DNA of 64,000 nucleotides, from positions 16,740,001 through 16,804,000 of the forward strand of contig NC_135763.1 in the NCBI RefSeq assembly GCF_052425735.1, given 5' to 3'. Shown in pieces: positions 48,363 to 51,080 of this stretch. The position numbers were made by a program, and so were the translations under genes. The notes under the pieces were generated by a model. That model saw nothing but the letters and a program-made list of their open reading frames with translations, had not been told where the DNA came from and searched no databases. Source of the DNA: Oculina patagonica. Its lineage: Eukaryota. Every line of letters begins with the position of its first letter. The first letter of the stretch is position 1.

Positions 48363-48760
48363 TATAACACAATCATCAATAGACATCAAATCAAAAGCGA
48401 GTTGTTTTCGTAGACACACTCAATGATTTCAGTCCAAACCCTTCATTTATATGTATTTGGAGTTCCCGGTGTTGTGGTCTAGATCTGGTCTTTGCCCATC
48501 GTGCTGTGCACTGTTGAAATGCTCGGAGATATTAGCTGTTCAAGCTTAGTGCTACTCTGAACTCCGAGTGTAAATAAACATGATGTTGTGATCAGCCGGT
48601 AGAACCAATCAAATTCGCGGATTACCAATAGTGTGTCTACCAATACACGGTATTACATGATGACAGAAGCAAGCATGTTTTTTATTCGACATACATAATG
48701 CTATTCTGCTATCCTTTTTATAACACCTACTAATGCTATTCTTGTTTCAGTCTCCTGACA

Positions 48761-51027
48761 ATGAAGACTTTCAGTATCGTGATCTTGGTCATTTTGTTGG
48801 TGTCTGCCCAGGTCAGCTGCCGCTCTTTTCTTGAAAGTGAGTAGCCTGCTATCAAAGATCATCAAACCTTGCAATGACACAGATAAACTTTACAGACTAC
48901 AAGTTCACTTTTAGACTGTCAAAGTTTGCAGTTTGTGGGACAGGGAAGGAGAGTGCCCCCCTCTTTATCTCCAAAGCTTTGGTAGTATAGCTTATATGGT
49001 GTGAAAAATGTAAAAATGAAAAATGACCTCAGGTTGGGAAGACACTAACACGAAATTGTGTATTTCATGATTTGCCATTTTTGATCCGCCGTCTTTTTAA
49101 TTTTAAGCTTAATATAAGAACATCACAAAAATTGGTTTTGAAAATTCGAAAATAATATACGAATGTATAACGAAAATTTAACTGGGCACCCCATCTAGGG
49201 CTTTCCACAAGTTGCTCGGCAACTTTTTGGCAACTTTTCTTGATTCGAGCAACTTTTTCACCTTCGAGCAACTTTTTTCCTCTCGAGCAACTTGTTGCAT
49301 TTTGAGCAATTTCCAAACCGAAGATTTCCGAAGATTATCCGAGTGTTGTTCAAAGGCAATGCGAACGTTTCCGAAGATTTACGAAGTTTACCAAGACTTT
49401 CGAGGAACGTTAACATCTGAAGACATTTCAACTTTTCGGCTCATTTTGCATTAAAACATTACAAAACTCGTCAGCAAACATGACGTCATTGATATCTTCA
49501 CGATTTTTCTCAGTAAAAGAAATCCTTGTTATTTAAAAAATTTTCCCCTTAATGTGTTATTTAGATACTTCTTTTGCTGAAAATTGCATAAAACTGCTTA
49601 AAATCTTACTCTCAAAGGAAAATTAGCATATACCGTATTTTCTCAAATAAACGCCGGGGGCGTTTATTTAAAACTTGGCCTCAGAGACCCGGCGTTTATT
49701 TTGAAGCCGGCGTTTAATCGGGGTCCGGCGTTTATTTATGAAGTAAAATTTTCAATCATTTTTAAGTTGATTTATTCTTTCACATTCTTCGAGACCCATG
49801 AACAGTTTGTCGTGGCGGGACGTTGTATCCCTTGGACCCGACCTCAAATTATGTCCGTTTTTCTCATACATACGGCATTACATACGGCCCGTGTATATTG
49901 TAATCAGTTTTGTGCAAACAGAACAGCTAGCAACTTGGAACAAGGCGGCCTTGAAGTCCCTATTACTGTTCAATGCGCGATTTCCACCCAGAAAGCACAA
50001 TTTTTGACAAGGCTAAAACAACTGATAAACAAACGCTGGAGGGATCCTTGCGATTTTAGCGACAGCGAGCACTACAACAAAAGAAAGAGAGTGCGTAAAA
50101 AAACAAAAAGAGCATGCCGGAACATTGACTTACATTACTATATTTTCAATTTTGTGTTGTTGTAATTGCACGTCATAAACCGCAGTTAATGCTACGCCAG
50201 ACTTATTCGTTAAACATTTATATTAAAATAACAAAAGCCGTATACCATATAGTACGCGTCATATCAGTGCTTTTCTAGTGAACATCTTCACTTATTGGAT
50301 CGACTCAAATAAACGCCGGGACCTCGATTAAACGCCGGGACCCCGAATAAACGCCGGGGGCGTTTATTTAAAACTTGGCCTCAGAGACCCGGCGTTTATT
50401 TGAAGCCGGCGTTTAATCGGGGTCCGGCGTTTAATCGAGAAAATACGGTAAATGATTAGAAGCAGCGTTTTGGAGTTTTTGGAGCAACTTTGGAGCAACG
50501 TTTATTATCAGAAGCAACTTTTTTGGATTTTTGGAGCAACTTTTTGAGAAATTATATACGGGCAACTTTTTGGGAAATCTCGAGCAACTTGTGGAAAGCC
50601 CTAACCCCATCACCCTCCAGTTCAAATACGGGAAACAAGTGTTAGCGCTCGGTATTCAACAGAAAGAAAAAAAAACTTCAACACGATTGTTAGTGCTCGA
50701 TAGGAATGTCAAGCACTTGATAGTTAGAAAATTATGCCCATAAGACATATATCTTGTATATGCAAGAGATTTCTAGCCTCAAATCACAAAAAGGAAGGTG
50801 TATTTCTGCTTCGTTATCACGTCTGCATACATAGACAACGGAGACCCTAATATGTATTTTTTTATTATTTCATAGAAAGGGTACCAGACAGGGTTAACGA
50901 CAATGACGTAGCATCTGAGAAAGAAGCGCTAAGACCACGGCAATGGCAAATGAGATGTGAATACTGTGATTGTTATCATGATGTCGAAGAGTTCTGTGAA
51001 GTGAATAACTGTTGCTCTGACATGTGA
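48761..51027 (+). CDS. Putative secreted small cysteine-rich peptide precursor (75 aa: signal peptide, acidic propeptide, 6-Cys mature peptide)
   Basis: Exons 48761-48836 (donor A|gtgagt) and 50876-51027 (acceptor tttcatag, branch-like ccctaat) join in phase 1: MKTFSIVILVILLVSAQVSCRSFLEKRVPDRVNDNDVASEKEALRPRQWQMRCEYCDCYHDVEEFCEVNNCCSDM*. Upstream acceptor ends 48750. Candidate UTR exons end at 46036 and start at 52484 (AATAAA 52539). Confidence 0.8.
49196..50603. mobile_element. hAT-type non-autonomous element (8-bp TSD accccatc) in the peptide-gene intron
   Basis: tagggctttccacaagttgctc / gagcaacttgtggaaagcccta; TSD 49188-49195 and 50604-50611; gagcaact subterminal repeats. Confidence 0.9.
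49633..50448. mobile_element. Non-autonomous pogo element nested in the hAT element
   Basis: ta|ccgtattttctc...gagaaaatacgg|ta; same family as the 9652 fragment; contains an ORF remnant with GGLEVP. Confidence 0.88.
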
Positions 51028-51080
51028 TGATCACGTGAAACATGTCTCGACAACACACCAGGTAAGAGAGATTGCATATA

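Follow-up and report, generated by a model that had tools for sequence, protein, structure and literature searches.

This locus raises the question of whether two short exons on chromosome CM126640.1 of the coral Oculina patagonica (assembly GCA_052425735.1) form a real gene for a small secreted cysteine-rich peptide, and what such a peptide might do. The window, that is the whole stretch of DNA that was analysed, is 64 kb long, and all positions given here are coordinates in it. A first-pass annotation of the window had proposed a hidden spliced gene whose precursor has a hydrophobic signal-like segment at the N-terminus and a six-cysteine peptide at the C-terminus. We find an intact gene that is already annotated (LOC144655916 in RefSeq, ACROYT_G021984 in GenBank), and we put at roughly 0.6 the probability that its product is a secreted acidic mini-protein that is restricted to its lineage, rich in disulfides and directed at a specific binding partner. 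The features of the locus are collected in Table 1.

Structure and annotation of the gene

The start codon ATG at 48761, the donor after 48836, the acceptor before 50876 and the stop codon TGA at 51025-51027, directly followed by a second TGA, were all confirmed. The coding part of exon 1 covers 76 nucleotides (nt; 48761-48836), runs into the donor AAA/GTGAGT at 48837, and encodes a signal-like segment (residues 1-20, 48761-48820) and the beginning of a linker. The acceptor is a T-rich tract with the end TCATAG, exon 2 starts at 50876, and the codon split by the 48836/50876 junction is AAA (Lys), with the intron in phase 1. Splicing gives a precursor of 75 amino acids: its N-terminus is very hydrophobic, and past a middle part the C-terminal stretch carries the six cysteines. 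A seventh cysteine, residue 20 (48818-48820, in V-S-C-R-S-F), lies at the end of the signal-like region. Shortly before the acceptor, the frame of exon 2 opens after a stop codon, and it contains no ATG ahead of the cysteine region; an unspliced form would therefore be made without the signal peptide.

The gene is not hidden, as had been supposed, since both public annotations carry it without a function. GenBank holds KAL9969731.1, "hypothetical protein ACROYT_G021984 [Oculina patagonica]" (P0001, 91 residues), and RefSeq holds XP_078372230.1, "uncharacterized protein LOC144655916 [Oculina patagonica]" (P0005, 115 residues, a cluster mate of P0001); an exact look-up of P0001 returned no record. 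The range of the coding sequence on record corresponds to 44135-51027. Both proteins contain the complete joined 75-residue product and use the acceptor at 48751 and the junction 48836/50876, and their difference is confined to the 5' exon. The GenBank 5' exon lacks an ATG; the record gives Met for the opening codon CTG, and base 48751 completes the exon's split codon. In the RefSeq model, translation begins at an upstream ATG at 44647 that adds 40 in-frame residues, about 37 of them from the exon 44647-44756.

An exhaustive HMMER search with the exon-2 peptide over 1.84 billion protein representatives returned four matches, namely the gene itself (P0001, the best match, identical across all 49 residues), two coral-derived relatives (P0002 and P0003) and a spurious one. 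The latter (P0004, expect value E = 7e-4) was rejected: it resembles a C2H2 zinc-finger protein, is repetitive, and owes its match to C-x2-C knuckles. P0002 is encoded on L003, a 1.7-kb Logan contig of run SRR15960026, which falls within a series of Caribbean coral genome-skim runs cited in PMC12856378; judging from this accession series, L003 probably belongs to a stony coral. It carries exon 2 with the acceptor. The source of P0003 is a Tara metagenome scaffold, L004, which is syntenic with the window over several kilobases and includes the two coding exons, 82-84% identical. This scaffold retains the ATG, the GTGAGTAG donor, the intron position in phase 1, the acceptor AG and the seventh cysteine. 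The exon-2 DNA is 79-82% identical on L003 and L004, with the acceptor AG and the double stop kept in both. The gene call behind P0003 (L004 4682-5269) runs 170 residues past the real stop, a wrong genetic code having been applied to host DNA; the apparent read-through ('WW') was discarded as a gene-caller artefact in which TGA is read as Trp, the DNA having TGATGA. In word-index protein searches, the exon-2 peptide alone gave no match, and further searches found the gene itself and P0002 only. A candidate from a Joint Genome Institute (JGI) metagenome scan, L006, was rejected, having a seven-residue word in common with the peptide and no cysteine pattern.

Two annotation sets use exactly these junctions and a syntenic relative shares the intron; this is the decisive evidence that the gene is real and spliced. 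The same two facts led us to reject a chance open reading frame (ORF), and they bear out the spliced gene with its signal-like segment and six-cysteine C-terminus. Cysteine richness by itself is not special: the window has 9 open segments with at least 6 cysteines in 28 residues, against 2.2 in Markov simulations. Signal-like mini-exons that start with ATG and run into a GTRAG donor are rare: the two strands of the window have 2, against 0.27 expected, and exon 1 at 48761 far outscores the other in hydrophobicity. Neither exon has a paralogue within the window, no other annotated paralogue came up among the 1.84 billion representatives, and a transposon-derived ORF was rejected, the exons being unique in the window.

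The two annotation pipelines disagree on the start codon, and in one model the signal peptide is masked by a non-conserved extension of 40 residues. If the 115-residue RefSeq form were the true product, the hydrophobic segment would be an internal signal-anchor and the protein would be tethered to the membrane with the cysteine module outside the cell. The RefSeq model does have this coding sequence, and the frame is open from 44647 through the acceptor at 48751. We nevertheless consider this form improbable: no match to the 40-residue extension was found on the orthologous scaffold L004, the GenBank model uses another 5' exon without an ATG, positions -3 and +4 of the upstream ATG are C and T whereas the conserved ATG at 48761 has A at -3, and annotation pipelines commonly pick the longest ORF. 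Because the extension has no counterpart on L004 and the context of the upstream ATG is weaker, the 75-residue form is taken here as the conserved product.

A TATA-like motif was seen about 35-45 nt upstream of the conserved ATG, by the conserved acceptor AG, both in the window (48713-48727) and on L004 (about 3490-3510). Given its place near this acceptor, transcription could also begin just upstream of exon 1.

Selection on the cysteine module

The six cysteines are kept in the L003 and L004 copies, so that homologues conserving them, whose absence would have told against the proposed peptide, do exist. The insertions and deletions among the three copies are all multiples of three (3, 3, 3 and 12 nt), and the TGATGA stop is kept throughout. 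In the core, defined as the last 25 codons from M-R-C-E-Y, 21 residues are invariant in the three sequences. Nonsynonymous and synonymous divergences (dN/dS) by the Nei-Gojobori method were 0.048/0.824, 0.047/0.401 and 0.031/0.602 for the three pairs in the core, that is ratios of about 0.05-0.12, and 0.245/0.687, 0.21/0.213 and 0.286/1.133 in the linker. The counts are small but consistent, and by these estimates the cysteine module is under strong purifying selection and the linker is not. Conserved splice sites, in-frame indels and a core ratio well below 1 are together what a protein-coding gene under selection has.

The same data bear on the idea that the locus is non-functional, being either a chance combination of open segments and splice signals or a decaying pseudogene caught by prediction software. 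Cysteine-rich open segments do arise by chance, at about 2 per 64 kb, and no transcript-derived protein turned up in the word-index searches. However, the start codon, the donor, the intron phase, the acceptor, the six cysteines and the double stop are conserved at a synonymous divergence of 0.4-0.8, all indels are in frame and the core ratio is low, and we regard this idea as close to refuted.

Secretion, charge and possible roles

By heuristic, the N-terminus of the precursor has the form of a classical secretory signal, with a basic n-region, a hydrophobic h-region and small residues at -3 and -1. Its hydrophobicity score is 3.67 over 10 residues; it has Lys2, no acidic residue and a 13-residue hydrophobic run, V-S-A or V-S-C precedes the candidate cleavage sites, and the segment is conserved on L004.

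For the rest of the precursor, the first-pass annotation had described a propeptide with a KR site and an acidic spacer ending in RPR, followed by a 28-residue mature peptide starting with Gln, in a layout of the toxin or antimicrobial type. The comparison does not support this scheme. KR or RR is present in two of the three sequences, and the Tara copy on L004 has D-E-T instead; for the R-P-R/Q-W-Q site the Tara copy has I-P-R/Q-G-Q, and L003 has lost it through a deletion of 12 nt. Neither a dibasic nor a monobasic pro-peptide cleavage site is thus conserved, and the mature peptide starting with Gln is not established, since no site is common to all three. Nor is the spacer acidic: at pH 7 the linker has a roughly neutral net charge of +0.8, and the cysteine core, with 7 Asp/Glu in 25 residues and a charge of about -6.5, is the strongly acidic part. 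An acidic core beside a near-neutral linker is the reverse of the anionic pro-piece and cationic peptide of antimicrobial precursors, which speaks against a classical antimicrobial mode; neither the acidic pro-region nor the net positive mature peptide of such precursors is present.

That no described family would be recognised was an expectation that held in every search made. A Pfam-A hmmscan with both exon peptides at E up to 10 gave no family (ShK-like, anemone neurotoxin and defensin families included), and a profile of the three sequences against all PDB sequences, also at E up to 10, gave nothing below E = 0.17. A structure was predicted with AlphaFold2 on a shallow alignment of the window peptide and the proteins returned by the searches, and Foldseek with this model (predicted local distance difference test, pLDDT, of 60) against the PDB gave nothing below E = 1. 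The search over the 1.84 billion protein representatives gave no described family either, and in the literature library no paper was found with the peptide motifs, accession numbers or locus tags of the gene.

The framework C-x2-C-x-C-x7-C-x4-CC had likewise been called unrecognised. Its loop lengths and sequence are indeed without a match, but its cysteine order, C-C-C-C-CC, is already catalogued as conotoxin framework XXV (as25a), as defined in PMC4278219. The literature search found the same order in the centipede toxins SLPTX7/20 and named in a beta-defensin paper. The likeness to the conotoxin and centipede toxins is one of pattern only: they come from other phyla and have no detectable sequence similarity to the coral peptide, the loop lengths (2, 1, 7, 4, 0) not having been compared residue by residue, and the HMMER search over the protein representatives gave no toxin and hence no homology to a cone-snail precursor. 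A common cysteine order is not homology, a framework being a pattern and not a family. Beta-defensin-type peptides, among them the defensin-like channel toxins of sea anemones, are also small and secreted and have this order; however, no Pfam defensin or anemone-toxin model matched, and the coral core spans 20 residues from the first to the last cysteine and is strongly anionic. Defensins are typically cationic.

The SCRiPs (small cysteine-rich proteins) of stony corals and sea anemones resemble the product of the present gene in being small secreted cysteine-rich scleractinian peptides made from a signal-peptide precursor, with cysteines clustered near the end. Their framework has eight cysteines, three of them clustered at the C-terminus (PMC13608440), whereas the core described here has six, with CC followed by three residues at the end, and is encoded by a gene that is single-copy in the window and gives no sequence match to them. 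The SCRiP structures 7LX4 and 5LAH, named in the same paper, were returned neither by the PDB profile search nor by Foldseek with the low-confidence model. On a rival reading the product would be a venom or defence peptide of cnidocytes or gland cells, delivered to prey, predators or competitors, in which the disulfide-rich core would block or modulate a channel or receptor. The succession of signal peptide, linker and C-terminal cysteine-rich peptide would suit that role, as would the cysteine order found in framework XXV and SLPTX7/20, and stony corals do make cysteine-rich neurotoxins in the SCRiPs, one clade of which is reported to be under the strongest purifying selection (PMC13608440). 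We think it rather unlikely all the same, as no toxin family matched in Pfam, in the PDB sequences (SCRiP entries included) or in the fold search, no tandem array accompanies the single copy in the window, the core is strongly acidic, and a near-invariant core beside a variable linker is unlike a rapidly expanding venom family.

The acidity of the core, with its 7 Asp/Glu, is what would favour a peptide associated with mineral, calcium or metal, which calicoblastic cells would release into the calcifying space or the matrix of the skeleton, or which would chelate metal ions through its CxxCxC, CC and His residues. Homologues have so far been met in coral-derived DNA only, and the skeletal matrix proteins of corals include a recognised class of acidic secreted ones (PMC9532382). 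The CARPs and SAARPs are, like the present product, secreted, Asp/Glu-rich and coral-restricted, but they are much larger and are described as probably disordered (PMC9532382), and the coral peptide has a 25-residue cysteine-locked module. The weak, non-significant matches to PDB sequences and folds were mostly zinc-binding knuckles; they carry almost no weight, because all of them lie above E = 0.1 and the model has low confidence. The supplement of the O. patagonica skeletal proteome paper, a short text that may lack sequences, did not show the motif. Cysteines in the secretory pathway, moreover, normally form disulfides, and proteins of the metallothionein type are cytosolic, without signal peptide and without aromatic residues. 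The coral precursor has a signal-like N-terminus, has Tyr, Phe and His in its core and gave no Pfam match. On balance an association with mineral or metal seems unlikely to us.

Precursors of prohormones and neuropeptides offer the remaining likeness: in them too a single-copy gene encodes a signal peptide and a spacer of low conservation, followed by a short C-terminal peptide that is sharply conserved; the coral precursor differs from them in having neither a cleavage site conserved in all three sequences nor an amidation signal. Among the specific roles we give slightly the most weight to an endogenous signalling or regulatory peptide, and even this assignment is tentative. It is possible, though doubtful, that the gene is the first to be recognised from a family of acidic six-cysteine peptides that is undescribed, restricted to stony corals and built on a disulfide scaffold of its own, and that its peptide acts as an endogenous extracellular signal or a modulator of calcification and not as venom.

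The reading that we prefer, a secreted acidic mini-protein with a specific partner, would work as follows. Exon 1 would supply a signal peptide that sends the product into the endoplasmic reticulum and the secretory pathway, and exon 2 encodes a fast-evolving, mixed-charge linker of about 30 residues and then the near-invariant acidic module of 25 residues. In the endoplasmic reticulum the module would fold as a compact unit with three disulfides. It could be secreted either with the linker attached (about 55 amino acids) or freed near the Pro-Arg-Gln site that two of the three sequences have, and outside the cell it would act by binding one specific conserved partner, without disrupting membranes in the manner of a cationic antimicrobial peptide. 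Binding to one conserved partner is suggested by the near-invariant module, the drifting linker and the single-copy gene taken together.

Several points weigh against this reading. The selection estimates rest on three sequences and small counts. The splice sites are supported by annotation models and conservation, and no transcriptome-derived copy was found in the word-index searches, whose reach is limited by shared words and by length; this may point to low or restricted expression. The upstream in-frame ATG of the RefSeq model would bury the hydrophobic segment 40 residues in. Signal cleavage is ambiguous, after Ala16 or after Cys20, and the secreted product could therefore carry a seventh, unpaired cysteine. 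Past the signal, no cleavage site is common to the three sequences and conservation begins only at M-R-C-E-Y, and the AlphaFold2 model, with its pLDDT of 60, is of low confidence.

For a specialist the gene is no surprise: it is a lineage-restricted secreted cysteine-rich peptide of a familiar cnidarian kind, a well-supported orphan. Coral genomes hold many small lineage-restricted secreted peptides that are labelled only "uncharacterised", and very few have been tied to a role. What is unusual here is an acidic cysteine module of 25 residues that stays nearly constant across corals 0.4-0.8 substitutions per synonymous site apart, while the rest of the precursor drifts. If its role could be placed in signalling, calcification or defence, it would give coral biology a new peptide scaffold.

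Intron, flanks and other features of the window

The nested transposons that the first-pass annotation had placed in the intron are there. From the length of its target-site duplication, the outer element would be hAT-like. A copy at 9650-9946, next to an ORF that encodes a DDE_1 transposase domain, matches the inner element at 95% identity. On L004 the orthologous intron measures 1001 nt and has none of the Oculina insertions, and comparison of the two introns indicates that the one in Oculina patagonica is enlarged by nested DNA-transposon insertions.

Table 1. Features of the locus, in coordinates of the 64-kb window (TIR, terminal inverted repeat; MITE, miniature inverted-repeat transposable element).
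Feature	Positions	Strand	Remarks
Alternative 5' exon, GenBank model	44135-44172	+	38 nt, spliced to 48751; GTAAGT donor; P0001 residues 1-12
Alternative 5' exon, RefSeq model (coding part)	44647-44756	+	ATG 44647; donor GTAACT at 44757; P0005 residues 1-36
First conserved coding exon	48751-48836	+	Acceptor AG 48749-48750; 84% identical to L004 3525-3627
Phase-1 GT-AG intron	48837-50875	+	2039 nt; junction common to both annotated proteins
Outer non-autonomous TIR element	49196-50603		Inside the intron; perfect 23-nt TIRs; 8-bp target-site duplication ACCCCATC
Inner TIR element	49627-50454		Nested in the outer element; TA-flanked ends; subterminal AAACGCCGG repeats
Second coding exon, to stop	50876-51027	+	Encodes the variable linker (to 50949), then the cysteine-rich core
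Conserved six-cysteine module	50950-51024	+	25 residues (51-75); C-x2-C-x-C-x7-C-x4-CC; net charge about -6.5
Conserved stretch after the stop	51028-51061	+	CACGTG palindrome 51032-51037; ends at donor-like CAG/GTAAGA
TA-flanked MITE-like element	51081-51662		TIR CAGTTGAATC; just downstream of the gene

Beyond the coding region, the conservation of the TGATGA and of about 30 nt that follow it (51025-51061) is roughly equal to that of the coding core in all three copies. Two of these copies have the donor-like GTAAG, 34 nt past the stop (it is kept in L003 and not clearly in L004), and the conserved region may be an intron in the 3' untranslated region or a regulatory element. The MITE-like element downstream carries a G run of 22 nt (51194-51215), and no part of it (51081-51662) aligned to L003 or L004.

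The neighbours of the gene are CCDC28 on the plus strand and, on the minus strand, an AMPK-beta gene. A position nested within the latter was rejected, as the AMPK-beta gene begins downstream, at about 53957, and on the other strand. The CCDC28-family ORF at 38981-39388 (plus strand) is intact. Over 38544-39670, the window was compared with L002, a contig of run SRR28110921, the species of which is named O. patagonica in PMC12856378. Both encode an identical CCDC28-family protein, and over about 1.1 kb of DNA they differ by 42 substitutions (about 3.8%) and by 6 gaps, which is high for one nominal species.

Other long reading frames were found elsewhere in the window. On the minus strand, an 881-residue ORF with a reverse-transcriptase domain lies at 769-3414, and one of 307 residues with the DDE_1 transposase domain lies at 10037-10960, beside the copy of the intron's nested element. 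Also on the minus strand, an uninterrupted ORF of 840 residues at 6960-9482 has TPR repeats and a C-terminal CHAT domain, and an exact look-up returned no gene with exactly this product on record. On the plus strand, 24914-27187 encodes an OTU cysteine-protease domain and an A20-type zinc finger and is part of an annotated gene of 1122 residues. Open frames that overlap on the two strands at 17746-18415 and 25858-25921 contain much Cys, Leu and Phe, with up to 10 cysteines in 28 residues; they look like low-complexity or repeat sequence rather than peptide genes.

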